Shown here in pieces: positions 31,048-58,474 of a DNA stretch of 62,687 nt (position 1 is its first letter; each line of letters starts with the position of its first letter). The stretch comes from Haliotis rubra (taxonomy: Eukaryota): positions 186,001 through 248,687 of the forward strand of contig NW_025765147.1 of assembly GCF_003918875.1 (NCBI RefSeq), read 5' to 3'. The notes beneath the pieces are model-generated. The model searched no databases. It was not told the DNA's origin and worked only from the letters and a program-made list of their open reading frames with translations. Both the position numbers and the translations under genes were made by a program.

Positions 31048-34000
31048 TCATTTGGTGGCGAATGTGTTTGTAGACTGCACCTGCTGGCAGGCCAACTCGT
31101 ACAGGTATCTGTAGTCCTCCTGAATAACAAACAAGAGGATCGAAGAGAATTGTTTGCAAATCCATGTCAGCATTTATAATTATTATACCTATCCATAGAA
31201 ACATGAGAGTATTGATTTTAAAGGAACACGAAGCAGTTGATCGAGTCCTTGAATCACGTTTCGCACTGATCTTGTCAAAACCATACGCGTTCTTTACTTA
31301 CCTTTGCATGGGCATGTGGCTGATATGATCGACGTGCAGAATACTTTCAACTGTTCTCGAGTACATGGTATCGTCGTTAATTTATAGTGAATTATTAACA
31401 TCTCCTTAGGATATATATTGAACAGCATAACAAATTCTGCTTTGAGCAGATATTTGCAGTTTTTTGTTTTCAGGAACCTGTTAAACGTCTATGATATGTT
31501 TTAATTCGGGCTTTCTTTCACGTCAAACCTACCGCCATGGTTTAACTGATATTGTGTTCAACATCTCCATCTGAACATATAAAGTATGCTCACCACACAG
31601 GTGATGGGTTGCCCATTTCTACACTGTATCTCCCTGACTGTCAAGTAGATGTCCACTTCCTTGTCCAGTCTCAGGCTGGTCAGCACACTGACTGCAGCAG
31701 CAAAGAGGCTGCACTTCCTGGGATCGTCTCTGGTGTATAGTATATTTGATAACAGTATATTTGATAATAGGCGCAAACATATTCATTATCTGTAAATCTT
31801 TATATTTCCTGTTGGGGCCCTGGCATGTTGGACAGTCATCAGGCAGACAGTTTATCGAAAACAACTATCTGTGTATCAGATGTCGAATAATGAATTATAA
31901 TTCGTGTTGTTTTCATGGCGTCATGCAGAAACAAATGGCTACATGCACTGAAGGTGTAAACGTTGCCTGCATATGCTACGTGCACACCATCTACTGACTA
32001 TTCAATATACCTGAGAGACGGAGTCACTTTCACCTGTCATAACTGATGGCCTATGAGCTTTCGAAACGTTTGTGTAACGGACATACATTCAAGAACAGCG
32101 ACCTACCGACACTGGAGTATGACGGGATGGGGCCCACTGATGTGTTGACGTTCAGTCAGGATCTCTACGAGCATCAGGAGATTGGCTTTGTCAAAGTGAC
32201 GTTCTGTAGATGGGGAGTTGAAGTTGTAGTTGACGATAGACGCCACACCTGATCCGCTGTCCTGTAACAAAGGAACCAAACCAACACATGATCAATCAAC
32301 CATGTCCTGTGGGACAAAGTATATTAGTGGCTGTGGGTTGCCAAGAATAACGACACACCCGTGTTAAAGAATTGTCCATACCCAAAATGTCTGCATCGTC
32401 TTTGATTCGATGGTTAGTTTCATCCCCGTCACTCCTACAGAAACGTCATCAACGGAGTTCAAGGTCACGTGAAACTCTCCAAATGTCAACGACGTGCCAA
32501 CGTCCTTTGGCATGGCATCAGAAGGATTCTAAGGATGAAGGTAAAATCAAATCTACAAGGAGATCCGTAATTCACAAGTGTCCATTAGGCTAACACTTAC
32601 AAAACTAAGATATAAGCTATAACATGTTATTTCATGTTGATCATGTCAGTGCGCAGTGGGAAGCGTAATTTTGATGCTATCTGTGGTAAGGATTTCTAAT
32701 AATTATTGAAAGGACTTCGTTGTATGAATATCCATCGAGTTTTTCAGGGCCAAAGTATTGACACATTGTCAAATCTCTCAGACATAACAAGTGAACATAT
32801 TGGTATTGATAAGCAATAAAAGGGTACCCGATAATTTCATTTCTCATGATATGCCTTGAGACCTAAAATGTACATTATTGTTACCTGGCTGATGGTGATG
32901 ATGGTACCAGAACTGTTCCCGCATACCAGCTGCCATAGTTCTTCGAGAGAAGGCTCCTTAACCACTCCGATGTTGAGGAAGCCCTTCTTGTTGAAATACG
33001 ACTTTGAAAGCAAATAATATATTTTCTTCATCCATACAATTGGCAGATTTGGATTTATTTCGTCCTGCATTTATGTAGATAATATGTATAACAAACAAAA
33101 CAAAGAAAAGTAAACAAAATGATTGTAGAAATTATTCGCTCAATACATACCGGCAGAGGTGTTATATTGAAATTGAATAGATCATCACCTACAAAAGAAA
33201 AACCATGTTAACATATTTCCTCAAGACATACTAGTAGAATATGTGTGAACGAAGGGAATGAAACAATAAACCCCGAAAACTTTGTATGAAAGTCCACACC
33301 AACATATTAACATAAACGTTCTTCAAGTAAATTGTCATTCCGTAAGAAGTTACTTTTGATGACACACTTGATACATTTTAGATTTTGACAAATATGTTTA
33401 CCAAGATAATATTGTGTTAAAGGCTTTAGAATTTAGCTGCAAGGCATAATTTGTTGTACCATCTTCTTGTGTGGGATCTGGCTTTGCGTCAGTCTTCTGG
33501 TCTCTCTGGAGTGACATCATAACTTCCAAATTCTGGAATAAAATTAATATCCACATTCAGAACATATTCAAGTATTCGTTAAACTTTGATCCTACCGTAA
33601 GATACTTTGGTTTGTTAATTATTTTTCTTTACATAAGTAAATTTGTTTAAAGAATCGTCACGTAACACTATAGATTTATCCCAAAACGTCACCAGAATCA
33701 CCTCGTATTCCTCCTGGATTACGATGTTGCCTGCTTCCAACATAGCTGGCAGTTCTCTAGCCACTACCGGCGAATCCCTGCTGAAGAGTGCCTCGAGGAC
33801 AGCCCAGTGGAGGAACTTATACTGTCCCTAGAACAAACACCAACACCAACAATACTACATGTGCCAGGAGAACCTTTTATTTATTTAGAAACACCCACAA
33901 ACATTCGCAATACATTATATACTAATATGGATCAGATGGTTTATGCCAGTGTGTTGGCATACGATATAGAACGTCAGTGCAAAAGAACACCCAGTATTCC

Positions 34001-37000
34001 CAGAAACCAATTCCATTTAGCATGAAGTACATGGAATGGAAGAATTCGTTTACACAGTTCCTGTCTGGAGAAGTCATGCCTACTACACCTGTGTCTGCAC
34101 CATGTTCATCCTCTGGTCCCTCATGTTGAGGACGACGATGAAGAAGTTCACTTTCTCCTCCACAAGCGCCTCATTCATCAAGATGTCAAGACCGATGAAA
34201 GTACCTGTCCGACCCACTCCAGCACTAGTGGACAAACAAACGTATTTCTGTACCACTGGTTGTGTTCCTATTTTAGACAACGTGTTAACCCAACAGCAGT
34301 ATTACTACTTCTTGTAACGTTTTGCGAAAGCAAACATTTATGGATGTTTACGTTTCGGTGTATATTCTTATTCCTTCACCTCATCCTCTTTATTTTGAGG
34401 AACAAGACATTTCTGAGAATGTTAACGTTTTTACTCCTTCATCAGGTGTAGGAGTAAGAATATATTCCGAAACGTACATGTAGTGTTCCTCAAAACAGAG
34501 AAGGTGACATCCATACATCTTTACCTTGTGTATTACTTCTAAATGCCGTTTAAAGAACTTACTTTTATTTAGATTTGAATATTAACAATATCTGTTGCAA
34601 TAAAATTTGGTCCTCATGGGTTGAACCGATTATAGAAGCCTTAAGATTCGCCGATACTTCTTGGAACGTATTGCCTGCTTTGTCTGCCTTTTCTCCCACT
34701 ATTGTCACACTATTAAAGGAATCGGAAGATTAGCCTAACTCACCCTATATCTCAACTAATGAGGTTACAAGATGTCCATGTTGCCGAGCTTTGTGATGTA
34801 TTAATAGGATCCTTATTCAGTGAATATTAGAAGGAATTTAAGGACTTTATATAATCAAGTTGAGTCAATTTCTGGTCTTAACAACCAGCACCAAGACCAT
34901 ATGCATTAACACTACCAACAACCTTGATGGATCAACGTTTATCTTTCACATATTTCAGATAAATTATTTTGGTGTTTTGGAATTTGTCAAACTGCATGCA
35001 ATTTCTTTTATTTCGACATGGCAAACACATTGTAAAAAGCAAATACGATACAGTGATACCTGCAGTGGACAATTATTGGTCCTGCTTGTCCGTCATTTTG
35101 CTTGCTGCATATGTTGACATGTCTCCAGAAATTGACGAGAGAGGGCGCCGTGGGAACTCCATGGTCTGGCCACGAGGTGTAGTGGTACTGGGTCACTTCA
35201 CGCCGAGTGTCCTCCTGAAAATATGCCACTTATAAAAACTGAAAGACGACAATAGGAAAGGTGACCCAATGGCGATAACTCAATCTGTTGTAATCTCTTC
35301 AAGGTATTGAACATCTATGAACAGCTGAGTTTATACTAATTTTCTCAGGGGCATCCTGAGTCAGTCGACGAACGAACTGATAATAATTCATGGTTTGTCT
35401 ACAGCATACCAGTGTTCTTTGATTTGACCGAAATATTCAAACGTCTCAGACGTACGTCTCTTTAGCATGGGTACCACCCTGGTTATGTCTACACGTGACA
35501 TTAGACTCTCCCTTACCAGAGAGATTTGGACTTTGACTATCAAACGTACCTTACGGTGATGCAGCAAGAAGATGCGAACTGTGTAGTGTGCACGTTCTAT
35601 AGACTTCTCCTGTGTCACAGTGATGTTTCCATAACTACCGCGTTCTCCCTTTCCTAGCCAATACATGTGGCACATGTGCTGAAACGAAAGTAACACTTCA
35701 TTCAAAGATATCCAATTGCACCACATAGTATATTACTATGGACTGTATTTATTGAGGGTATCAAATCATAGTAGTTGTAGAACTAATAGCGTTTGGATAC
35801 GTATCAGAATTGTTTTGATGGCTGTTCTTTGTTGAAACATATTGTTAATTGCCTCTTCCTTGAACGTAACGCATAATTTCTCCACGCACCTGGCCATCTT
35901 CCAGTAGATTGGTGACCATGACGATCTCCCGAGATCCCTCCTGCCAGACCATACTCCAAAAGTCTACAGCCGTCGAGTTCAGGGGACCTGTGAATCATTG
36001 TTGGTATGTGAGTGTGTGTCGTTATATATCGTTCTTACCAACATTCCAGTAATACCAAAACGGTGGACACAAGAAATGGTCTTCTGCAACACCACATGGA
36101 TATCCAACCGTCTCATCATAATTTACATGAAACTGTATGTCTATACACAACATTTCCAAGTTAAAAGAAACTGTATTTTAGATGACATCCAATGCGTGGG
36201 CATACAGGTGTTTGGGTTACACATCGGTCACACAGTATTTCAGATTCAAGTAAGAAGCAAGCAAAACCACCAGCATGGGTATGATTCGAGCAGGCCCGGG
36301 GTTTAGGATCAATCTTGAAGTTGAAACCAGGAAAATAAGTCTGTGAGTCTTCAGGGATGGATATTGTAGCGTGTCAGACTGCTGTATCTCCTGTATCCCA
36401 TGTGATGTGGATGACTAATTATTTTAACTTTGACAACACATATGGCAAATAGAACTTTATACTTACCTTGCGCAGCTATGAATTTCAGAGGACTTTTAAA
36501 GCCCTGAAAAAAAAACCCAATGTATTCTATCAAAGTTCATGATTTCTGTCTGTTTGTTTGTTGTTTAACGCCGCACTATTCAATATACTATAACAATATT
36601 CCATCGAAATGGCGACAGTCTATAAATAATCGAGTCTGGGACAGACAATCCAGTGATCAACAGCATGGGAACTGGAGAACGCATTTGGGATACGATGACA
36701 TGTGTCAACCAAGTCAGCGAGTCTGACTACCCGATTCAGTGGATTCTAACTGGGATCGTCACGGCTTGTTTATGAATGAAACACAATGAAAGCTTATGAG
36801 CTTGGTTTAAATGGCGGATATATAATACGTATAAACGTAATATAATCATGTTTTTGTTATATCATATTTATGCTCTTGCCTCTCTCTACATACGTGTATG
36901 TACGATGCGTTGATATAATCTGCCCCACTTTCGCTCTGTAAGTGCACCCGAGTATCGTCATCTGTTGATGATACGTGACAAATCGAAAGTGGTGCATACG

Positions 37001-40000
37001 AATGATAACATTGTAACGTATGTTATGTATTAACATGTACTGTACCACAGTCACTTTGGCCGAATGGAAAGGGTGAGTGAGTTACTTTGGTTTTTCCAGC
37101 AATGTCATGGCAGGGGACACCGGTAATGTGCTTCAGACATTGCACTCATGAGGGGAATCAACCCGCCTCTTCAGCGTGACGAGCGAACGCTTTATCCACT
37201 TGGCTACCCCACCGTCCCCATACCCGTAGGAATGTGTTGTCAAAACGATTGGCCGATTATCTAACTATATCATACGCATATGCTTATGAATACCTCCCAA
37301 ATGATAAACAAGATGTGTATGAAAATCTTAGGTATGCTGTCCCAACGGTTGGGCCATCACAAACACTTGAAAAGGCAAGTCAAGCATTCGCCACATCATA
37401 TGACGATTTTGTTTTACAATATATCATCATTACATCCATGCATATATATCTTTTATGTTAGAGAATCCAACACGATATAACCGATCCCTGCTGTTTCTTA
37501 AGAACTTAAGACAAATGATGTTACATGCAAATAGTCTGTTGTAGCGGTTCTTTTGGAGATTTTTCTCTCTCGCTGCAGTCTCATATGTGTGAGTGTTCCT
37601 CAGGCCGGCCGGTAACATCTGAAAGAGAGCGGCAGTCATATAAATAGTATTACGTTTTTAAGCATAAACAATAAGTGTTTACATTCTGCAGCAGCGCATG
37701 GCATCTTGACGTAATGCTACTTCCACTGCAAATTAGGGTCCATGCAGGAACCAAATGTACTGTAAGTCCCCATGGTCGCTGGTATGGTGATCTACCTTCA
37801 GTTGTTGGCAATCTATAGCCGGTTTATATATTGTATTGCCATTTAAAAGTAACATATTTTAGATTTTATTACTAGTCTTAAATTTTTCCCTCTGATAATC
37901 TAGTAGTTTTACTGTCCTTTGTCGACAGGTGTTTTATAATGTAATTGTGTTTATTGTTAATTTATAACTTTTTAAGTCACAATATGGCTGAAATATTGCC
38001 GATGTGACTATAAATTTGAACTCACTCACTCCACTGGAAATTTGTTTTTCCAGACTCCAGAGAATACAGATCCTACTACATTTGTTTAGTTGAGTCCAAT
38101 CTGGGATTTATACCCACACTGTCTGACAGAATGGATTAGATGGCTGACTTTGTGTGCTGGCGATTACGTGCCTTACTCTGAGAGTGTGGGTTCGAAATCG
38201 GATGGGACTCAACCCATCAAAGGTACAAGAATCTGTATTTTGCTGAGAAAGTGTAATCCTATATTTAACACCTGTTACGTTTGATCAATATCTAAATTGC
38301 CTTGTGTATCCATAAGATGAAACTGGGAAGGTACTTGCCGCGTACTCCGTGGCGTTGTTAGCATCCAGCTTCTCTCTGATGTAGCTGGGGAGATTCGCCA
38401 CACTAACAGCACTAGGGATGTGGCTCTGGAGGGATCCGTTAAGAGACGCAGATTTTTCCTCCGGGTAAGTAGGTAGTGCCACACTTTTGAACTCATTAAG
38501 ATCAAACACTGTTGAGTTCGGCTGTTCGACTTCATCCATCTTAATTGCTTGATTCCTCACGGCAGCTGATTGATCATTCATGCATTACATGAATATCAAG
38601 TTCTCGTACAACTCTCAACCAACTATCAGTAGATGTTATATATTATGTATTTTTACGAGCCAATATGCACATGTTGACCTATATTAGCCACAACAGTTTG
38701 TCGTTGATGATGCCAATATGCCAATACCATTTTGTATGCTATACTTATGATTTTAGTTATATCAGGTCCCTTCTCGTGCCCTTGGCACTCACTCACCCAA
38801 ACTCATGCACACACGCACGCACGCACTCACTCACTCACGCACCCACCCACCGATCATGCTCGCTCACTCGACAACCAACACACTCACTCGGTATGTAATA
38901 CATTGCTCGGTTACCTCTGGCTTCTGCATCCTTTGGGTTATACCATTTTTTAATTCCATTTCTGAAAAGTATAGAGATCGGTAATGCATACACAAGTGCT
39001 CCAAATGACTAACAGTTTTGGGTGAACCCTTGTGTCAATATTTACAGACAAATTAGAATACGATAAATACGAATTTTAATGACACTCGTGAAATTGAAAC
39101 AGCGGTGTCATATTAACTTGTCCTTGCCTGTGACAAAACAAAATGTGAATACGACGTGATGGTGTTATCAGCAGACACAGATGGGTTTACCTGCAGACAA
39201 CTGCCACTACGACGATAATCAGCAGCAGCACGACCACTCCCACTACTGCAGCAATCATCGTCCCTGAAATTGACAATTCACCAAACTGGAAGTTCTTGAA
39301 AGCAACTGGGTGACATGAAACAACTATTACGTGACTTACTTTACTGACATCGCTCATACATATTGATTAAAACACTTTGCTTCCTACCTCTTGCATGGAT
39401 GTAAATTGATCTGCTCGTTGAAATGTTTAGTAAGCTGTTTGGGTATATCTTAAATTACAAACGTCCTCACGGAAATATAATGTTTTTTGGAGTTTATTTC
39501 GTAGTTTTGAACACAACTAAAGTTTCATTGTTAAATATTCTATGACTATCGTTTTTCACATTTTTTTGTTTTCAACACTTTTCGTAAAATCATCCGAAAT
39601 AGATGAGTTTTACAGGAGAGCAAATGGTGTCATTTGTACCCCTTGAAATTTCGTCAAAGTTAAAATGTACATTTCTGATGCAAGCTATGGTATGCAAATG
39701 AGATGTAATCTCCATAGGTTCGCGTAAATAAGATATTTTATGCATAATGTTATATACCATTCATCCTTCATTTCTAATAAATCTTAATTGACACACAAAA
39801 TAATTGATTTAGGGATTTCCTCATTACATGTTTCATATATTTAACAATGACACTTATTGAAAGTTTACTATTTTTATTTTTACGAGTTGATAGCTTGGAT
39901 TGTCAATTGCACAATCGCTATGGCAACACAATCGCTATAGCAACACAATCGCTTCCCGTCAAAACAGTGCTGCAGGTAGTTGTTACGACCCACTGTTGAT

Positions 40001-43000
40001 AGTGACGTAAGTTATAGCATGTTTCTATTTTATTGAAAATATACAATCTTTTTACCTGTAAAATGGTATTTTGAATGATGAATAGCGGATCAACTTAAAA
40101 GACCTAGTTGGGACAAAACATAGTTATTTTCATATTTGTTAAAACGACCTATTTTAATGAAGTAATAAACAAATAAACTCCCGAAACAATTTTATTTCTA
40201 CTTCCGTGAGTACTTTACACCTCCACCCCCTGCTTGACTGTGTTGAATTCTCCATCATAAGGGATACATATTTCAATATCAAAACAGTAAAGGACCTTTT
40301 TAATAAAGTTAATTATCATTTAATCATTGATTTTTTAAAAGAGATAGATTTGTTACATGAATTTTGATATATGTTTTGTAAATAGAGAAAGTTATACAAT
40401 TGGTAGTTCAGATTATCAACTTAGATTGTTGGTGGCTGTATCCTCAAAGGGAGTTGAAGTAGCGTAAAATTATTGTCCTCCTGAGAGGGTACGTAAGTCC
40501 CCAAAATTGTCAAAGTCAATCTTGCTCAACCATACTTTTAATCGTAGTATATTTGTTTCCTTTAAAATTCGGCTAAACTTTTCCTACAATCGCCAGCGGC
40601 TGAAGAGATGGTGTAAGTCCAACTAAGGTCCATGCAGGTAGCAAAGGTACTGTAAGTCCCCGTGGACCCTAGTATGATCAACTACCTTCAGATGCTGGCG
40701 ATCTATAGCCCGTGTTTTAAATTGTACAGTCTTCTTCAATTAAAATGCTTTAGATTTACATTCTAGTTTTATATTCATATCTGTGATACTCTAGGATTTT
40801 TACTGTCCATCTTCGACAGGTTTAACTCTTCACAACATTTTTATATTGTATGCATTGTTTTTGTCACGATATGGCTGAAATATTGCCGATGTGACGTTAA
40901 ATATTAACTCACTTACTCACTCACACCTCCACCCGCAGGGGCGGATACAACTTTTTGGGAAAGGGGAGGGGGAAGGTGCACACTCTTGAGAAAAGGGAGG
41001 GTGCACACTTCATTTTCACCCGTTTTCACGGGTCATTTAATAAACTTTCAGGACAAAAGCAGGGGTGGCACATGCAACTTAAGAACTTCATGAATATGTA
41101 CACTATTTAATTAAGTTCCATGTTATAATTAAGTAACATTAACAAAGTGGAAGAAACACTAAGCGCCACGCTACTAATAAACAACATCCTCGTGCAGTCT
41201 TAGTAGACATGTCATGAGCAAATAGATTCTCCAAGACAGCATATTTTCATTGATGCAGATGTCAAATTTCAACTCATGAGATCATATATTTTGGATGCGA
41301 CATGTTGTGCCCGCCCAAATTATTCACTCAGTTTGCATTTTGCCTATCAGTATTTCATTTACCTGTATCCGCAACAGCAGGTTGTGTCGTTGGTTTTGTT
41401 TGCGACGTTGTTGAGGTCTCTGTTGGAACTGGTGCAGCGGTGCTTGTTTGGGATGATGTCGTGGGCTTGGTCGTTGTTATGGACGTGGTGGTGGTTGTTG
41501 ACTCTCCTGTATTGGACATAGTAGACATGGTAGAGGACGTTACTATCGGGTCAGCTAAAGAAAACCAGAAATGCATTTCCATATGTTGTATGAACCTTGA
41601 ATTGGACGTAAGGATATCTTAATACCACAAATGTATCTGAAATGAAACGTAATTGCATCAAAACAGAAACGAAACGCTTCGCCTTTGATTTAAACATCAG
41701 GGTACCGTTCCTCAAAGCAATCGTAGCGTTAAGGTGATCGTAACTCCTATGCTTTAACATAGACTTACGACACTCGTAGCGCTACGATCGCTTTGTGGAA
41801 CGGGCCCCAAGTCAGTTGAAGATGACAACCGCACAGAAGTTTGATGGATTTCCTCTTAAATATCTCCGAGAGCCATCGAAATGTGGTACAAGAACATTGT
41901 CTTGAATGTCAGTGATGTACCGTCGCCCATTCAGATTTTGTGTGAACGTGAAACGGTCAAGTTTACAGTCATATGAGGGGAAACACTACACCATAAAATG
42001 AATCCAAGGATTACTTGCTCCAAGATACTCCGTTGTGCAAGTTTAAAGTGTTTCTGCGGTGTTAGTCACGAGCTCGACCATCAGTCATGAACGACGAAAT
42101 CCACTTTCGTCTCACCAGTGGATCCTTCCCCCCTGACGTCAGTGGCATCGAGCTTACACCAAGTTAGTCGCACTGCTGTGAGCTCTGGGGATAACAACGT
42201 GCGTCTGATAGGTTGTCTGGCTCTATACCCTGCCGAAGTTAGGTAGTTTTGGACCAATCTGATGGACAAACGACGATGTGGAAGCCACTCTGATTTAACT
42301 ACGCCACTTGACAAAACGGGTAATGTCTTGGGATTCTGAGAATGCCTGTATCCTCCCTATGAGTTGTGACTCGCGGTCGTCGTGAAAGCTGACGGAACAT
42401 AACATCCTTAGTTTGCTGATGTTTTCTGGCCAGTCGGCTGATGACAACTTAACCATCATCTACTGACAAGCCCTGAACGACATGTTAGCATTCAGTATAC
42501 CAGTAACTTGCCATCTGTGAGAAGTTGTCTGTTAAGGAGGCCCTATATGTGTTTATCAACAATGGCATCAATTCATTTTCCAGGTGTAACAACAGTTTAC
42601 TGAAACTTGACATTTACTTAATGACAGGTGATGCGCGTAATGCTCGCCTTAGACTGGAACACGTGCATAACTAAATTAATGTATTGTACGCCCGATGAGT
42701 CAAAATACTCATTCAAACAAACATAATTATGATATGAATATAAATTGACATATGGGAGTTAAAAATCACAGGTGTTGCGGTACTTTTACCATGTGTATAG
42801 TTAAACGCGAACGATACGTTACGCCGTTACGCATACGGGTACTGATTTAGACATTAGTTCCGTTGAAGATACAAACGTGCATATGAAGGTGAAGGTATTT
42901 CGTGTAGTCACGGCATCGTAGGCCTGTGCTATGCTTTATATTATGAATTCTAATGGTATCGAAGAACGAAATGAGTAAAGTGAGCGAAGGAGTTACAACG

Positions 43001-45367
43001 TATAGTCACATTGACTTTATTTCAGCACCATCCTGACTAAACAAGTTATGAGTGATATATATTTTAATTATACAAACCTGTCGACAAAGGCCAGTATAAG
43101 TAACTAGAAAATCACAGAAACAGTATTGAAAATCTCTAAATATCTCTACAATTTAAGTTATATTTAGAACAATACAAATTACAAACGTTCTATGCATCGC
43201 CAGAAACTGAAGGTAAATCACCATACTAGGGACCATGGGGAAGTACAGTACTGACAGATTTACACGTTCCCTTAAGCCGTTGACACATAAATTGAAATCA
43301 AAACTATTCTACGTTATGAATGCTGATAGACTTATACGTAGGCTGAAAGAGGACCATAATTTTACAATGCTTCAAACTCTGTGTGGATACAGCCACTAAC
43401 AATATCAGGTATTAATATAAACTACAAACTATAAAGCATATACTTGTTTAAAAAACAGGTTTCAAATTTTATGAAACAATTCAATTTCTTATAACAATCC
43501 AATAATTAAATGAGAATTGACATTATGGAAAAGATCCTTCACTGTTTTTACAATGAAATATATATCCTTTGTGATTGAAAAATATGAACAAAATAATGTA
43601 TCGTCATTGACTAAACACATGTACATAAAACTTCTACCGTATATTTCCATAGATTCAGCATCATCGCACCTTCTGTAGGTTGGCGATTTGGTGGTACATT
43701 TGCTGGAATCAGCAATATATCTCTCCTTGTCAAGATTATTTTGTAGTTTTGGAATCAAGTACAAAAGAGGAATGGGCATGTCTTCAGGTGTAATAGTCAA
43801 GACAAACGCTGATAGCGCTGATGAAAGGTTTAGGCAAATACATATATTTCTAGTACCGTATATTTCCACCTCGCAGAAACTCAGATTCAGCATGCTAGCT
43901 GTAGGTTGGCGATATATCCGGAGATGGATCCCCGTCAGGGGTACATCACACTCCAGGGTGTACTCTGCTTCCCACATGTAGGAAGAGTTCGCGATGTGAC
44001 ATATTCTTCCATCTACAGACACATTTACGTCATCCTGTTGATCTGGAATATGTTGAGAAGAATGAACCAAATACCTTACACTAAATACAGATTCGGGTGT
44101 TTTTAGCATTGCTGTAACATAATAGCTGGTCAATTAATGTTTAAGATGTCTCATATAAAGTACTTGTCTGATATAAAGACCTTGTCAGTATTAGTACTAT
44201 TAATTTTGTCCGTATTAGTACGCAGCGGCGTAAAACTTTCGTTATTTTGTGTTTCTGATGACACAGTACCTTCCCAGAATATCTTGATCCTGGTAACTGT
44301 CCTGCTCTGTGTAAACTCCGCCTCCCATGCTGGGTATAAGGACGAGACTGATGCACACGGTCCTGACGTCACACCATCAGTAACCCAGGATGCCTGTCCA
44401 GTGATGGTGTAAGACTTGTTGTCCCCAGATGTAAAGTTACTCGCTGCTATATTATCTGTAATAATAAACAGTATCATTATCCGTGGTATGATAAGTTCAT
44501 CACATTCCAATATGGTGATTCAGGTTGGAATAACTGTACGTACTGCATGTAGAATCCAGAAAATGTTCTTTTACTTCGGCTTGTCATCACGAGTTGTTTA
44601 AAACGTTCCAGTATCTTGCATCAGCTTTCAGCATTAGTCTATTGTTATATCTTCATCTCAATCAGATTGGACACTATTGTATCGTTTTCTGCACTACATT
44701 CTTTATATTGTGTTGCTACTACTTACACTTAATTTAATTTAAAGTAAAAACCTAATGTGCTAACATAAACACTAAACTAATGGCAATGCGATTTAAATGT
44801 ACATGATGTCTTATTGTGCATCATTGACAAACATATTCCGTTCGCAGTTATGGGCAACATATTAAATAAATAGGTAACTGAAAAGCAGGTGTAAATTGTA
44901 ATCCTGACCTGCCTTACCTGTAACAGCCATAATCAAAACATCGATATCAACGTTACCTGCGGTACAGTTCTGGGTGCAGCTGGGGTCTTGGCCGGGCACT
45001 GTAACACACATAGGCTTTGGGTTAACATGTGAATATGGAATGATACATCAGTCCATAAAATGGTCATTCTTTGATTTCAAGGCACGTCGGTGAACGTACA
45101 GTGTATGTTTATTGTGCATTATTTGTTGTGGTTTATGCACATTTATGTTTCCGTTGACCAGAAACGTAGATATTTCCTCATTCTCATCAGATGTATGTTT
45201 GTCTATGTGTTATTAGAATTACTTGTTGTGGTTTATGATCATTTATGTTTCCTTTCACAAGGAACGTAGGTATTTCCTCGTTGGCATCAGATGTAAATGA
45301 GTGTCTCACCTTGCGAGATCCATACAGCCATCAAAATCAAGTAAACAATGGCGTTCTGGGTAATCAT
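31048..45367 (-). CDS. Receptor-type protein tyrosine phosphatase with fucolectin/F5-8C-like ectodomain, mucin stalk, TM and tandem PTP domains (paralog C), 859 aa
   Basis: 23 phase-compatible exons totalling 2580 nt: 45367-45310, 44998-44957, 44443-44270, 44042-43857, 41554-41363, 39263-39191 (TM), 38961-38915, 38565-38339, 37618-37525 (KNRY), 36961-36894 (DYINAS), 36503-36467, 35987-35890, 35678-35550, 35214-35060 (WPDHG, VHC), 34224-34089 ([12 protein letters not shown]), 33827-33702, 33532-33460, 33188-33151, 33001-32885, 32528-32382, 32261-32107, 31729-31594, 31119-31048. Confidence 0.88.
36550..36765 (-). mobile_element. SINE-like family 2, degraded
   Basis: CAGACAATCCAGTGATCAACAGCATG...GACATGTGTCAACCAAGTCAGCGAG. 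Confidence 0.65.
37073..37219 (-). mobile_element. SINE family 1
   Basis: Body and head match the 238 copy. Confidence 0.7.
37735..38029 (+). mobile_element. 5'-truncated I/Nimb LINE (3' UTR only)
   Basis: Matches ~23460-23767; flanked by TSD TCCACTG(C/G)AAATT. Confidence 0.8.
40229..40922 (+). mobile_element. 5'-truncated I/Nimb LINE
   Basis: Matches ~23070-23767; TSD ACACCTCCACCC (40217-40228 / 40923-40934). Confidence 0.85.
41701..41807. mobile_element. Harbinger-like MITE, second copy
   Basis: Same sequence family as 5578-5684; flanked by CAG/CAA. Confidence 0.8.
41830..42800 (-). mobile_element. Degraded Tc1-like transposon
   Basis: Transposase-like residue ([31 protein letters not shown]) and TACAC...AAAAGTACCGCAACAC-type terminus. 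Confidence 0.6.
43075..43620 (-). mobile_element. Degraded I/Nimb LINE 3' end
   Basis: [30 protein letters not shown] plus 3' UTR motifs on the minus strand. Confidence 0.75.
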
Positions 45368-51900: not shown

Positions 51901-54900
51901 GCAACAAAAGAAAATATCATTTCAAAAATAAAATTCATTGATTTGAATTGACATCTTAGCACAAATTATTTTAATCATCATCATGATAAAAAGATTCATA
52001 ACACATAGTACACATCCAGTCTTCACTGTAGTTTCATTAAGAATGAACTGCGTCTGCCTACACTTATTCTGCCAGTAGACAAATCATCATATATTTATGT
52101 TATATGTTGTATTTATTATCTCAGCAGATATTTATACCTTTATATTATTGTTGACACGTTCGTGGTTACGTATGCCAGGATGTTTGGTGACTATATCATC
52201 GACAGTGGAGACGGTTAAGTCTCTACAACATCCCGAGGATGCAGCATTTCTCTAAAGTGTATCCATCGATACATATCTTCCACCTCGTGAAGTCGGAATG
52301 AAATTTTACTCTAACTGCTGGTTTGCCATAATGAAAGTGATGAATTAGAAAGTATGGCCAGCATATTATGTACCCAAATTGAGTTGGTGCTTACTCATAT
52401 CAATTAATCTCAATCAATCGTTGTCAAAACAAACGAAGTGAGTTCAAATTCATTGATTTTAATTGTGTAAGTGTGTAAGGGGTAAGTTCATGTCACCTAA
52501 TTCGTTAGGTAGTTCAGAAATGTGTATAACCCAGAGACTTAATCGCTTAAAACAACATGCACAGTCAGTCCCCCAACATCAAAGGATTTTCACTGTAATT
52601 ACAAATGTATACCAGGTAAGACATCACTGAATACACCTACATTCTGTCGTGTAAACACAGCGACCTTCCTTCAAGGATTAACGACAATATTTCATTTTTT
52701 AGAAGAATTGTGGACACCATGTAAAAAATTGTCAGGTGTGTTATCTTTGGTGTCCAATGAAACAAGGTCACGTGACATGGAACAGGCTTTTGGCAGCTGC
52801 AGATCAATGGTATATTGTTCAGTTATGTGGATACTGATGGATACATTTCTCAAACAAGGTACATGTAATAGCCCAATAGTTTGCTATAACGTTAGTTGGT
52901 TTGATATCTGTATTTTGTCTTTTTGTAACTGAAACCCAATGCAAAGTTTCGTAAATCAGGATAACTGAAACCTAATGAAGCCTTACCGGTTTCTCAGTAA
53001 TTTATCAATTTAAATTATCTGTAATTAAGTTTACCAAACGAAACGTAAAGGAGACAAAGTAGAATCTTAAGTTTCCATATTCTTTCAATTAGGTTTAAGT
53101 TTTCCTGAAATTAATTTTATGTGACCATATCTTTTATTTGAATTCTGGTGTACAGAAACATTGAAATCACTAAACTGAAACCTATATACATGTAGTATAT
53201 GGGCAGTTTAACAGGTTTCTGGATATATGCTGTATATACTGGTATATATGGAGTCAAATTAATTTCCTCTACGTTCGTTTCATTCAAGTTCTCATCAATG
53301 ATGGTTTCCAGTTGCGTTACGCAATGGAAATTACCAATGATACTTTCTGGAAACTAACTTTGTTGGTATCCGGCAGTTTCCCAGTCGCTGAAGCTAACCT
53401 TGTTGGTTTCCGGCAGGTTCAGGTCGCTGAAACTAACCTTGTTAGCCGGAAACCAACAATCATAGTTTCCGTGAGCGGAAACCTACGTGATTCTGACATT
53501 ACCAAGTTTCATGTAGGTTTCCGGAAAAATGGAACCTTGTACCTTGTTATTTTTGCTGTGATAGGACTCAACCCAACAAAAGTACTAGAATCTGTACTTT
53601 ACTAAGACAGTGAAATCTCAAATACAATATACGTTACATTTGACGACTTTCTAATCTCATTTTGTATTCATAGTCGGCAATTTACACATGAAAGTTCAAG
53701 TGTTCCTTTGTTCTTTTCCAGGTTTCTTCTCAAGGTTGCACTGTGGATGAAAATAAGGAAATAAATAACGGAACATTTGTACTTTCATGTGTTCCCTTAT
53801 TTGTTTCCATGAGTATATTTAACCAGACCGTAAGCATTGCGCTGATTCAGTTATACGTTTTGTGAAGATATACAACCGCTCAAACAGTCCATGAATGATC
53901 TCATATATCTTCAGTAATGTTCAACGGTCAATTTGTGAAACGTCCCGTCAGAGCCAGCGTCCTGGTGGTGTTAGTGAACTTCCCTCGAATCACTGTCGGT
54001 ACAGTAGATGTATTTGCTATCTGAATTTAAATATCTAATAACAAACTAGTTTTCCATATTAGATTTTAGTTGGTGCCGTTTTCGCCATAAGATATGTAGC
54101 CGTTTTTGCCAAGTCGAGGTTCCATTATGTCTAAATGGTGCCAAACAAATAATCCCAATGATTGGGCAAAATTATGTATCATTATTGACTGAATACATAT
54201 ATCTTCTACCGTATACTTCCACCTCGCAGAAACCCAGATTTAGCATTCTCGCATCTTCTGTAGGTTGTCGATGTATCAGGAGATGGTCCCCCCGTCACGG
54301 GTACATCACACTCCAGGGTGTACTGTGGTCCCCATCTGTAGGAAGAGTTTTGCGGGGTGTGACAGATTCTATCACCTACAGACACATATACGTCATCCTG
54401 TTGATCTGGAATATGTTTTGAGAAGAAAAAACAAAATACCTCACACTGAATTACTGGTAACATAAAAGATTTCAAAGCTGGTCAAATAATATTTAAGATG
54501 TCTCATATAAAGTACTTGCCTCATATAAAGTACTTGCCTCATATAAAGATACTCATATATCAGTATTAATACTATTTGTCAGTATTAGTACGCATTCGTT
54601 ATTTTGTGTTTCTGATGATACAGAACTTTTGCAGAATATCTTGATCCTGCTAACTGTCCTGTTCTGTGTAAACTCCGCCTCCCATGCTGGGAATATGGGC
54701 GAGACTGATGCACACTGCCCTCACGTCACACCATCAGTAACCCAGGATGCCAGCCCCCGTGATAGTGTAAGTACTGTTTACTCGCTGCTATATTAACTGT
54801 AATAATAAACAGTATCATTATCTGTTGTACGTTAAGTTCATCACATTCCAATATGGGGATTCGAGTTACTGTCTGTAGAATCCAGAGAATGTTCTTTCTC

Positions 54901-55605
54901 TTTGATTTGTCATCAAAGTTGTTTAAATCTTTAAAATATGTTGCGTCACCTTTCAGCATCTGTCCATTAGATCGAAGAAGTATTGTATTGTTTCCAACAT
55001 CATCTTCGTTACAGTGTGTTGCCCCTTTTGTTGAAAGACATCTTGTTAAATACCAAATACTAACTCTCCTACTTACACTCTTGTGGTTAACAAGTAGTTA
55101 ACAAGTAGTAAATGTCTATACAAAAAACATAATTTGGAACTATAAACCCTAGTATATTGGCAACGAGATAAGTTTTCGAGTGGTTTAGCGACAAAACATA
55201 TTCCGTTGGCCGTGAAAAGCAAGTGAGAAAGTTCTTATAACAATTAATGAAAACTTCGATATCAACGTTACCTAAGGTACAGTCCCGGGGGCAGTTGGAG
55301 ACTTGACCGGACACTGTAACGTACAGAGGATTTGGGTCAATATGAATATCTGATGATTAAATGGTTAATATAATGGTCATTCTCAGAAACATTTGCTTTC
55401 AAAGCATTCCTCTGTGAATCCAATGCAATTGTCACTGCGCATGTTTATTCTAAACTGTTTGTGTATGCTCATGTTTCAGGTTCTAGGAATGTAGGTATTT
55501 CATCATTGGCACCAGATTTATGTGTGTAGCAGATGTATACAGCTCACCTTGCAGGCTCCAGACAAGCGTCAGAATCAGGTAAGCAATGGCGTTCTGGGTA
55601 ACCAT
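48931..55605 (-). pseudogene. Receptor paralog B: lectin-like ectodomain + mucin + TM + YxN tail, several frameshifts
   Basis: Exons 55605-55548, 55313-55272, 54784-54627, 54405-54210, 51499-51209, 50369-50269, ~49312-48931; indels in exon 3, exon 4, the TM exon (G6) and the tail (~49158). Confidence 0.75.
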
Positions 55606-58474
55606 GGTTCCACATTGGTTGAGTATGACATGAAATGAATTCATCCTTAGAGACCATACCATTAAGTTCATTGAGAGGAGACGAGATCAGAAATGACACT
55701 ACAACCTCACCAGTGAAGCTCACTCTTTCTGTTGGTAAATATATGTGCGTGAAACATAGTCACACATCATTCAGAAGATAAATTTGGCTATATACTGTTC
55801 ATATACTGTACACATTATGTGTACTACAAAAGGTACATTAAGCCAGGTCGTGTGTATGCTATGATATGGTGTATAAATACAATAATTGCCTATTTCAGAA
55901 AAATGAATATTAAATCCGCCGAGGTGTGACTCCTGCTTGATGGTGATTCTTAAACAGATGATTGTGATGTAGTCGGTGTATTATAGAATGGAGTATGTTG
56001 CTTTTATACAATTATTTGTAAACTGACTGAGATACGATTGATATCTGAATAATCGTCCTTTGTGTCTACAGGAAAATGCGTTCGGGTCTACTGTGTGATA
56101 ACATTCCTCGTGATAAGTAATGTACTCCTCAAAACAAAGTCGGGGAACTTCAGTTTTAATTAACGATTGAACATATTGGGAGATATATCGGATTCAATCA
56201 ATGTTGATATGATGATTATGAATGTTTGGGGAGTGCATTACCGCTTCCACTTCCTTATGACCAATGTTTGTACAGTAATCGCTCTTGAAAAAATGATTGG
56301 TGTATGACGTGAAATTTGCATGTGTACAATTTTCATCTTCAAACAAAACATACAGGCTGGATGAAACACTAACAAATTTGTAATGCAAGATGATTGTCAA
56401 AATTAATGCAGAGATTTATTGACCTTCTTGAAAACCGTCAAAATCAAGTATGCCACCCAATGGACGTGTATGGGGCTACTGCGTTGTGCATGTCACGTGC
56501 ATCCCATGCGTTGTGTTGAGAGGTGGTGATAAGGAAAATTGTGGTGCTTTCATAAGATGTATGTCTTTGTAAGTTTATACTTCCAATCCAAATTGATACT
56601 TCAGGTTCCCCTACTTTTTAAAAAAATATATGGGAAGAGTATATAAAGAGATGTTGTCACTAACGGTATGATCTGCAAAGAGGTGTCACTACATTTTGGG
56701 GCATCTCCCATAACTGCCTCAACTGCCACACCAGTTACTATAACAACTGATAACATCCCAGAGAATACTTAATAAATGTTAGAGTAGGACACTGACACGC
56801 ATGGTACAGCGGGCGTTGTTTGCAGGTCACAAATCAGAACGCATTCCTTCACAATGCAGTAGTACGTGGGCAGATGGATGATGAACGTGAGACGTCAATG
56901 CCTGACAATAACCAGTCTCGGGTATCAAACGGAATATATTCCACTTGGTGTAAACAGCAAAGTAGAGTAAATCACTGAGCATCAGTATAGGCATCATGAT
57001 TTCACGAATAGCCCGAATGCCTCCTGACGCACGTCAGCACAAGCTACAATGTGACAGGTTTTTCCGTGTTGTCGCAACTGTTACACTTCACTTGACCTTT
57101 GTGTCATAGCTACCAAACCCTTATATGATAACCATATAGCCTGGACTACCTGTTACTTGGCAATGATCTGAAAGCGTGAATGGCAGTCAAGTGCGTCGAT
57201 ATCAGTGCTAGAACTTTAGAGATATCGCAAACTGTCGCACTGTCGAAAACTGTCGGCACGCGGTGTTGTCGGTGTTTGCCGCAATCACATGTTGCTTAAT
57301 AGGATAATCGTAACGAGCGTTCCAAGGGACATAGCTTTATGAGGTTCGCTTGAAAAAACGGTCGGTCGGTAGAGGGCGCGAGAGTCGATCTAATGCAATG
57401 TTGCATTAATTCATTCGAACTTTTTAATTTCAAATTGTAATACCTAATATTTTTTCGGAATAAAGTATATAGTAGTTTCGCTCGGGGCTGATAGTTACAA
57501 TTATTAATGAGAGAAATGCATTATTGATTTTTAGAGAAGTGTGACGTGATAGTGTGCTTTTAAGGGCTAAAAAGTTAAGTACCAAAACCTTTTAAGTATT
57601 TGTTTTATGCTACATTTTGAAATGAGTAAATAATGACATAACATCAGTGGATGTTCACAAGTTATTTTGGGACATACAGAATTAGGTTTACACTCAAGAA
57701 AGATAATACCATAAACCAGTATCATGTACTCTCTAAAATGAAATACGAATCAGACGAGACCCTGGATTTTACATGTTCATTAAACATCTTTTAGAAGCCG
57801 AACAGGAACAATTATTTTATGGATAACATCTTTATTGCAGTTGGTGCGACGTTTCGATGTAGATGGTTTCTAGCACCGTTATCAAGCCAGTGATAAACAA
57901 CACTATGGACAAGGAAAATAGAATATGAAGGATATTGGAGTTGAACAATGATTTTATTCGTAAAACGATCATTACACATGCAATATGTCTTATTGAACGC
58001 TCTCATGTTACATTTTCGTTAAATGGTACCGTGTACAAACGCACCAGTTTTAACATTTTATTAAGCTTTATAAGTATTATATGAGTGCATGAACATGTGA
58101 TGGAAAGGAGTTCTAAAACAGAATTAGCGGGACGTTGTCACACTTATGTGCGGTGTTGTGGGAACGAACCTCTTCGTACAGGTTCACCAGATCTTGCCCC
58201 TACTGACTCTCAGGTGTTTTCAAATTTGAATATTGAATCATTAAGTTATTATTGGTGGTTGTCACAGAGGGCTGGTTGATGAACCAGCTTTCGAAAAACA
58301 TATGTCAATGAATTATTTTAAGTGTTCGAAAATGTGATCACTTCTAATTTTTCCATCCATAACCCTCGCCCTTATGGGCAAAGTACTAGAATATGATGGT
58401 CTTCACGGACGATACTGCAACGTTAATAGCTCCATGCGAGTTATGTTTCACCTGAACGACAGTAGGCACCAATC

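Follow-up and report, generated by a model that had tools for sequence, protein, structure and literature searches.

A probable complete receptor tyrosine phosphatase of the blacklip abalone with a lectin-like head, a mucin stalk and a degenerate but conserved D2 domain

The window analysed here is a 62,687-nucleotide stretch of DNA from the blacklip abalone, Haliotis rubra, and the gene under study occupies its minus strand from an ATG at 45367 to the end of a stop codon at 31048. On contig C257 three copies lie in tandem, and this is the third (copy 3). Read in the order 45367 to 31048, its 23 exons join into one unbroken frame of 863 aa; leaving out a 42-nt mini-exon (exon 1b) brings the count to 22, and the frame still holds. 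Acceptors are AG throughout, donors are GT but for one GC, and exon phases are compatible along the whole gene model. An open reading frame of 2592 nt with canonical splice sites is not explicable by chance. The RefSeq paralogue P0001/P0124 and the H. cracherodii protein P0004 served as exon guides, and between them account for all the exons from the lectin head down to the stop. The encoded protein consists of a signal peptide, a mini-exon segment with two Cys, an F5/8-C / F-type-lectin-like domain, a Ser/Thr stalk, a transmembrane (TM) helix, and two protein tyrosine phosphatase (PTP) domains, D1 and D2. We consider it likely that this gene encodes a complete type-I membrane receptor tyrosine phosphatase. 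The initial annotation had described an intact receptor PTP, a description borne out by the 23 exons in frame and by a part order that is the same as in H. cracherodii XP_071082305/6.

All exons are located on the minus strand. Exon 1 (45310..45367), with an in-frame stop directly upstream of its ATG, holds the start codon and a hydrophobic signal peptide of 19 aa, after which a GT donor in phase 1 splices the N-terminus into the ectodomain; the N-termini of P0004 and P0128-P0131 are similar. Exon 1b (44957..44998), a mini-exon in phase 1-1 that encodes two Cys (C-x4-C), is probably included; its AG and GT sites are conserved in copies 1 and 2, and P0004 and P0128-P0131 contain a counterpart segment. 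The two halves of the lectin-like domain are encoded by exon 2 (44270..44455; 75% identity to P0004) and exon 3 (43857..44042; 65% to P0004), the latter closing with a CEVEIY-type last strand. Exon 4 (41363..41554) encodes a mucin-like stalk of 64 aa in which 35 residues are Ser or Thr and 6 are Pro, a composition of the O-glycosylation type that supports the mucin region proposed for the ectodomain. Exon 5 (39191..39263) supplies the single TM helix, the sole Kyte-Doolittle peak >1.6 in a 19-aa window (residues 216-252), with basic residues following the helix. Two juxtamembrane exons come next, the basic 47-nt exon 6 (38915..38961), also present in RefSeq P0001/P0124 of copy 1, and exon 7 (38339..38565), which ends in the GC donor after 38339. 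Copies 1 and 2 share the donor of this GC-AG intron, and RefSeq P0001 splices at the same junction. Exon 1b as a probable exon, exon 6 and the GC-AG intron are additions to the model first proposed.

The assignment of the head as lectin-like, made in the initial annotation, is supported only at the level of the fold, with sub-cut-off Pfam scores, Atlas features and a Foldseek search on a low-confidence model as its support. PF22633 (F5_F8_type_C_2) scored 13.9-14.5 bits on the head, below the cut-off of 27.8, and PF00754 gave no match. Atlas features placed the head close to F5/8-C and fucolectin clusters, at scores of 0.94-0.95. Of the 50 best Foldseek matches, nearly all were CBM32, F-type lectin or discoidin domains, including eel fucolectin (1k12), bass FBP32 (3cqo), the lectinolysin lectin domain, CBM32 modules and the discoidin domains of CASPR2 and DDR2, with TM scores of 0.4-0.54 and E values of at least 3e-4 for a model of pLDDT 58. 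F-type lectin, F5/8 type C and CBM32 domains are all-beta units of ~125 aa, as the abalone head appears to be, but the head reaches them at sub-cut-off Pfam scores and a TM of ~0.5. Judged by eye, it has other residues at the positions of what we take to be the F-type lectin fucose site, His / Arg / Arg. At the sequence level, the head was found only in Haliotis. Situated at the tip of the stalk, it would bind a glycan or another extracellular ligand. Ig, FN3 and EGF families were all missing from the Pfam results, both for the ectodomain exons and for the complete H. cracherodii relative, in agreement with what had been noted from the sequence.

The public annotation of the locus differs from this model. 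The RefSeq entry (XP_046556809.1, P0123) is a 334-aa fragment. Its first exon is a different one, near 37690 within intron 7; the KNRY exon is left out, and the model ends within D2. This alternative start could reflect two transcription units, a short lectin-mucin-TM receptor made from the upstream exons and a non-membrane PTP driven by an internal promoter, in which case the joined model would be an artefact. For copies 1 and 2, too, RefSeq has models that are headless, and proteins of ~550 aa with the same head and no PTP domain occur in four abalone species. However, H. cracherodii XP_071082305/6 unites head, stalk, TM helix and both PTP domains in one model, and the same order is found in the second half of H. 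rufescens P0127. The phases of the exons also fit all along, RefSeq itself joins the juxtamembrane exons that follow the TM exon to D1 in copy 1, and no terminal exon was found 3' of the TM exon. Two separate units are thus very unlikely, and the full 863-aa model represents a correction of the public annotation.

D1 is encoded by exons 8-15 (33702..37618) and is 100% identical to RefSeq P0123 over 250 aa. Its exons are located at 37618-37525 (KNRY), 36961-36894, 36503-36467, 35987-35890, 35678-35550 (Met438), 35214-35060 (WPD), 34224-34089 (CX5R and Q-loop) and 33827-33702. The motifs that D1 had been said to retain can be read in the gene model: KNRY at 360-363, WPD at 494-496, Cys530 and Arg536 of the CX5R loop in the ten-residue D1 signature, and Gln574 and Gln578 of the Q-loop (863-aa numbering). 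The two D1 exons that were compared with PF00102 reached 43.9 and 47.9 bits (cut-off 20.9), and the paralogue P0001, whose D1 is 95% identical, reached 293.9 bits. Compared with tandem chains in the PDB, D1 scored 349-370 bits with PTPRS, LAR and PTPRA. At position 438, copy 3 alone has Met in place of the Lys conserved in the KCxxYWP motif. By its motifs, D1 would be the domain that performs the dephosphorylation, perhaps weakened by Met438.

D2 is encoded by exons 16-22 (31048..33532), located at 33532-33460, 33188-33151, 33001-32885, 32528-32382, 32261-32107, 31729-31594 (QCRDDPRKC) and 31119-31048 (stop TGA 31050-31048). The initial annotation had pointed to short first exons of 73 and 38 nt, to the absence of KNRY and WPD, and to the signature ILQCRDDPRKC; the first two exons match these lengths exactly, the alignment bears out both absences, and the signature occupies residues 791-801. 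The alignment further revealed that D2 has lost the KNRY segment, the Trp and Asp of WPD, the P-loop Arg and both Gln of the Q-loop, with the Cys kept. The Arg position of the P-loop is now Lys, adjoining two Asp. A deletion of ~20 residues takes out KNRY and the following strand, another removes six residues at the KCxxYWP site, and the tail has no counterpart to the C-terminal Tyr of YANF.

Evidence for a remaining phosphatase fold was obtained at both the sequence and the model level. PF00102 scored 27.9 bits (cut-off 20.9) on P0125, whose sequence agrees with this D2 at 99.6% identity, and covered profile positions 55-232 only; the best PDB sequence matches of D2 were the D2 domains of PTP alpha and epsilon. 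An AF2 model of D2 reached pLDDT 74 and pTM 0.75, and was partly guided, since its input alignment included canonical D2 domains. Foldseek related this model to classical PTP domains at E ~1e-12, with an rmsd of 2.6-3.6 A to PTP epsilon D2. By the Pfam match and the model alike, D2 keeps the PTP core fold.

D2 had also been called eroded. The motif losses behind this term are real, but ongoing decay is not what the comparisons show. Between copy 3 and copy 1, D2 displays Sd 16 and Nd 21, for a pN/pS of 0.37 (binomial P 0.0034), a figure that measures constraint against copy 1, copies 2 and 3 being too alike for a selection estimate on copy 3 only. D2 is 75% identical to its H. cracherodii counterpart, compared with 80% in D1 and 64-66% across the head and juxtamembrane part. 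The stem that leads to the abalone D2 domains in the tree carries 4.65 changes per site; the tips carry only 0.03-0.12. As far as these sequence comparisons tell, the eroded form of D2 has become fixed and is conserved by purifying selection. The motifs may have been lost in a single event before the split of H. rubra and H. cracherodii, with the domain kept by selection since. This type of D2 was found only in Haliotis.

The same constraint bears on whether copy 3 is a working gene. It could be a very young duplicate, silent or becoming a pseudogene, whose frame is open for want of time to decay, with the working gene elsewhere. In support of this possibility, copy 2, which lies 98.5 kb away and is 98.85% identical over 16.5 kb, is already frameshifted, with -1 and +1 indels that introduce stops in exon 12. 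The twins have diverged equally in exons and introns (0.54% in exons, ~0.6% mismatches overall), RefSeq provides a fragment only at the locus, and the change of Lys to Met at 438 is peculiar to copy 3. Against it, all 23 exons and 44 splice sites of copy 3 are intact, including the rare GC donor, and the wider family shows constraint. The indels of copy 2 could be assembly errors because one of them sits in a short G run, and a partial RefSeq model is compatible with the existence of a full transcript. We therefore regard the young-duplicate explanation as unlikely and retain the reading of copy 3 as a complete receptor gene.

Receptor tyrosine phosphatases are sorted by their ectodomains into eight vertebrate subtypes. 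A PTP-domain tree of 40 rows, which left out CD45, LAR proper, R2B, R3 and R5, grouped the abalone D2, on a very long stem, with the D2 half of the D1/D2 split (support 100) and left the abalone D1 clade in an unresolved fork with R4-type and FN3-type clades. The closest counterpart in architecture is H. cracherodii XP_071082305/6 (P0126/P0004), annotated as 'receptor-type tyrosine-protein phosphatase epsilon-like', which has the same part order, Cys linker included, the same QCRDDPRKC loop and a head with 66% identity. It differs in a stalk of ~115 aa, about twice the 64 aa of H. rubra, and in a Lys at the position of Met438.

The 'epsilon-like' label that NCBI gives to the abalone relatives points to the R4 subtype (PTP alpha/epsilon), whose ectodomain is short, disordered and heavily glycosylated with no folded domain (PMC10815196). 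The abalone gene shares with R4 the absence of Ig and FN3 domains and the subsequent TM helix and tandem PTP domains. In contrast to the R4 ectodomain, which has neither a folded domain nor a known ligand, that of the abalone carries a conserved, predicted beta-sandwich head of ~125 aa. Of the KNRY-type, Cys and Arg motifs, all of which are present in the D2 of R4 receptors, the abalone D2 has only the Cys. In the 40-row tree, the abalone D1 sits in the unresolved fork and not inside the R4 clade.

A relationship to CD45 (R1/R6), suggested in the initial annotation, finds agreement in the extracellular mucin-like region and in the tandem PTP domains with an inactive D2. The CD45 D2 loop, moreover, presumably starts C-R-D like that of the abalone. 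However, CD45 is defined by a Cys-rich domain and three FN3 domains in its ectodomain (PMC10815196), and Pfam recovered neither a Cys-rich domain nor FN3 repeats from the abalone ectodomain exons or P0004. The scores are also lower than those of the LAR/sigma and alpha/epsilon types. With D1 as query, CD45 reached 308 bits, while the tandem chains of alpha, LAR and sigma reached 349-370; with D2 as query, it reached 26 bits compared to 38.5 for alpha. The likeness is superficial, limited to the mucin region and the tandem arrangement, and a relationship to CD45 is extremely improbable. The gene is an abalone-only form of a well-known receptor class, and not a new kind of system.

Within that class, the abalone D2 can be compared with the D2 pseudophosphatases, for example that of PTPRK, which recruits the substrate Afadin (PMC9640194). 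These share with the abalone domain a membrane-distal, non-catalytic PTP fold under selection, but the loss in abalone is more extreme and its P-loop is full of charged residues. Given its motifs, the abalone D2 would not hydrolyse phosphotyrosine. By analogy with the D2 pseudophosphatases of vertebrate receptor PTPs, it may instead serve in docking or regulation, or possibly in redox sensing.

A bolder interpretation, which we put forward tentatively and think rather improbable, would make the gene the phosphatase branch of a paired-receptor system confined to abalones, with the charged, Cys-flanked loop of D2 in a new binding or redox-sensing job. A fast-changing lectin-like head, swapped among neighbours by gene conversion, would then be coupled to an active PTP in some receptors and to non-catalytic tails with Tyr motifs in others, reminiscent of the inhibitory and activating immune receptor pairs of vertebrates.

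Taken as a complete receptor PTP, the reading we favour, the gene has a modest practical value. Its D2 is stripped down yet kept by selection, and therefore offers a compact natural test case for non-catalytic D2 function. The gene also adds to the receptor PTPs a layout of the mollusc lineage, in which a lectin-like head and a mucin stalk are combined with tandem PTP domains.

Splice prediction on the minus strand, with sites set by phase and consensus and then compared with RefSeq proteins found using one exon of the second PTP domain (D2), gave a gene of 23 exons (C257:217048-231367) that begins with the ATG at 45367 and closes with the stop at 31050-31048. The resulting coding sequence of 2592 nt (863 aa) contains no internal stops, in agreement with the initial annotation, which had described an intact receptor PTP and whose listed motifs were all present in minus-strand open stretches. 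The acceptors are all AG and the donors all GT, except for one GC donor after 38339; this GC-AG intron follows exon 7 (gcg/gcaagt, window 38338-38339), its GC donor is kept in copies 1 and 2 of the tandem array on contig C257, in which the present gene is the third copy, and RefSeq uses the junction in copy 1. The two short D2 exons described earlier, of 73 nt (33532-33460) and 38 nt (33188-33151), were recovered on the minus strand, and a basic juxtamembrane exon of 47 nt (38961-38915, minus) extends the earlier picture. RefSeq paralogue junctions were the basis for this exon together with an acceptor at 39263; a transmembrane-exon acceptor at 39305 and a direct splice from the transmembrane exon to 38423 were both dropped in their favor. 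A 42-nt exon encoding two Cys (44998-44957, minus, phase 1-1) is probably included in the transcript, since it has counterparts in all the relatives; without it, the frame is still open (849 aa).

The joined 863-aa model was used locally alone, to check the frame, compute identities and pN/pS, run a local HMM scan, and build the tree, while the search, family, and fold tools received single exons or stand-in database proteins: P0123 (XP_046556809.1, from this locus) and P0125 (copy 2), which are 99.6-100% identical over the parts covered, and the orthologue-like P0004 from H. cracherodii. XP_046556809.1 spans the exons from 36961 to 32885 only, plus a different first exon, and skips the KNRY exon. 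That alternative first exon lies within intron 7 (window 37639-37716, minus) and is spliced straight to 36961. An isoform of this predicted type would be a non-membrane PTP without the phosphotyrosine-recognition loop. Phase fit, the lack of another gene in between, and joined models in H. cracherodii and H. rufescens argue that the head and the phosphatase belong to one gene. Several introns carry dispersed repeats of ~230-300 nt that are 70-75% alike (37731-38031, 40621-40918, and, inverted, 42982-43251; also 40248-40480 and 43349-43581). Within intron 3, a sub-threshold PF01498 match (E 5.8e-5; window 42084-42356, minus) marks what is left of a transposase HTH of Tc1/mariner type.

The greater part of the window is a repeat of C257:96-148 kb (93-98.9% identity) and of C257:0-43 kb (~92-95%). 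The window corresponds to the third unit of an array with a period of ~98.5 kb, and its segment 27338-49638 matches C257:114783-137097 at 97.8%. In the flanks of this block, identity is only 93-96%, a difference that points to recent conversion or staggered duplication. Over 16.5 kb, introns included, copy 2 and the present gene share 98.85% identity, and we considered whether this twin, 98.5 kb away, could be a haplotype misplaced in tandem. Against this stand the range of identity along the unit (93-98.9%) and the presence of a third array unit, so that sequence comparison favors a real tandem array without settling the matter.

On the predicted frames, the present copy is the sole full open one among the three on C257, because both others carry length changes. 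In exon 12 of copy 2 (C257:123011-123139, outside the window), one nucleotide is missing from a short run of G and another is inserted 62 nt further along, so that ~20 codons are shifted and stops fall at codons 457 and 463; this could reflect a genuine pseudogene or an error of assembly, and the RefSeq model (P0125) covers the 3' half only. Copy 1 has two head units, its second head exon is changed in length by 1 nt, and its RefSeq model (P0124) begins in the stalk. Divergence between the present copy and copy 2 is equal in exons and introns; therefore, intactness alone is uninformative about selection in this copy.

The head is a single domain of ~125 aa encoded by two 186-nt exons (44455-44270 and 44042-43857), and it is conserved across four Haliotis species, in receptor PTPs as well as in ~550-aa proteins named "mucin-5AC-like" or "uncharacterized". 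Its only Pfam match, to F5_F8_type_C_2, was sub-threshold, and its language-model features placed it nearest to F5/8-C and fucolectin clusters (0.94-0.95). The AF2 model of the head is all-beta and of low confidence (pLDDT 58), and a Foldseek search with this same low-confidence model matched nearly exclusively CBM32, F-type lectins (1k12, 3cqo, lectinolysin), and discoidin domains, with TM ~0.5. The earlier label "lectin-like" therefore appears fair at the fold level, with sugar binding only putative. The head was not found beyond Haliotis at the sequence level in the length range searched. Ser or Thr make up 55% of the stalk exon, as expected from the mucin region noted previously, and the ectodomain contains six N-glycosylation sequons. 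Pfam detected no Ig, FN3, or EGF families in the ectodomain, as had been claimed.

At least eight head units occur on C257, at ~27, 44, 98, 132, 150, 168, 187, and 230 kb. The nearest paralogue of the first head exon is the unit at 43.8 kb (95.1%), and that of the second is the unit at 149.6 kb (96.7%), a mosaic that suggests exon-scale gene conversion. Diversifying selection may act on the second head exon, although its pN/pS, 0.8-2.0, was not significant. The window also contains two other minus-strand head units of this family, at 54208-55650 and 809-1412: the one at 54.2-54.8 kb stays open only with a change of frame within its second head exon, and that at 0.8-1.4 kb is part of a gene running off the window. 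Beyond the second head exon of the present gene, an open stretch (window 43492-43760, minus) contains a degenerate copy of a head-exon end, with a "MEIYG"-like ending.

The first PTP domain (D1) presents the complete set of catalytic motifs (KNRY, WPD, the CX5R loop, and the Q-loop), as annotated initially. Used as a query against the PDB, D1 returned the tandem chains of PTPRS, LAR, and PTP alpha at the top with 349-370 bits, and CD45 with 308 bits, each tandem-chain total adding up two aligned segments; D1 chains with a single domain, from several subtypes, scored similarly to one another (183-204 bits). One departure is Met438: the KCxxYWP motif has a conserved Lys at this position, and both sister copies and H. 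cracherodii retain it. By analogy with Lys120 of PTP1B, Met438 may lower D1 activity but should not abolish it.

Alignment of D2 with canonical domains confirmed that KNRY and WPD are absent, as reported earlier, and the signature noted there, ILQCRDDPRKC, is present. A deletion of ~20 residues takes out KNRY and the next strand, the DYINAS site is degenerate, six residues are deleted at the KCxxYWP site, and the Trp and Asp of WPD are gone, as are both Q-loop Gln residues. The P-loop reads QCRDDPRKC, with Lys in place of Arg and two Asp within the phosphate cradle. Cys alone is retained among the catalytic motif residues. Single D2 exons had no match in Pfam or in a PDB sequence search, while the whole D2 matched PF00102 above the cut-off (27.9 bits) at profile positions 55-232 only, and its best PDB sequence matches were the D2 domains of PTP alpha and epsilon. 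The AF2 model (pLDDT 74, pTM 0.75) is disordered at residues 41-66, the site of the two short exons; outside them it resembles classical PTP domains (E ~1e-12), with an rmsd of 2.6-3.6 Å to PTP epsilon D2. As the input alignment contained canonical D2 domains, the model is support for a PTP fold, not proof.

The initial annotation had called D2 heavily eroded; the motif loss stands, and ongoing decay does not. Comparison with copy 1 revealed 16 synonymous and 21 non-synonymous differences (pN/pS 0.37; binomial P 0.0034 against neutrality). Identity to H. cracherodii is 80% for D1, 75% for D2, 66% for the head, 64% for the transmembrane and juxtamembrane region, and 40% for the stalk. QCRDDPRKC is intact in four of the five aligned abalone D2 sequences, the fifth (P0005) having Leu for Gln, and the CRDDPRKC core is common to all five. 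In a 40-row tree, the split between D1 and D2 domains puts the abalone D2 clade with the D2 domains; its stem measures 4.65 changes per site (0.92 for the D1 stem), and its tips are as short as those of D1. Judged by these comparisons, D2 is conserved, not decaying; constraint, identity, and a long stem with short tips suggest that the motifs were lost in a single event before these abalone species split and that the domain has been retained since.

This D2 type has a narrow range. Among 1.84 billion representatives, a large protein search with the D2 exon yielded a single true cluster, and two other hits (P0002 and P0003) were set aside as spurious repeat proteins; with the whole D2, a search of 5.8 billion proteins over a set length range yielded only three clusters, all from Haliotis. 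In this genome, the type is confined to the three C257 copies, apart from two weak matches elsewhere. For PF00102, the 1.38-Gb genome has 563 candidates at first look and 158 matches that were scored, numbers from which we conclude that receptor PTP genes are much expanded here. Literature searches found no published account of lectin-headed receptor PTPs in abalone or gastropods.

The CD45 ectodomain consists of a mucin-like region, a Cys-rich domain, and three FN3 domains (PMC10815196). The likeness to CD45 drawn earlier holds for the mucin region and the tandem PTP domains; however, the Cys-rich and FN3 domains of CD45 are absent in the abalone gene, and CD45 scored lower with D1 (308 versus 349-370 bits). 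R4 phosphatases, with a short, disordered, glycosylated ectodomain and tandem PTP domains, offer a nearer analogy, in agreement with the NCBI name "epsilon-like", although the abalone gene differs from them in its folded head, predicted dead D2, and missing C-terminal Tyr, and the 40-row tree does not put D1 inside the R4 clade, showing it in an unresolved fork with the R4-type and FN3-type clades. The initial observation is thus confirmed and its reading supported, with corrections on D2 decay and CD45 likeness and with the full-length transcript as a prediction. The gene represents a variant, restricted to its lineage, of a receptor class that is already known, and public data annotate part of it. 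For the role that its D2 may play, the best model is PTPRK, in which a D2 pseudophosphatase has an established role in substrate recruitment (PMC9640194).
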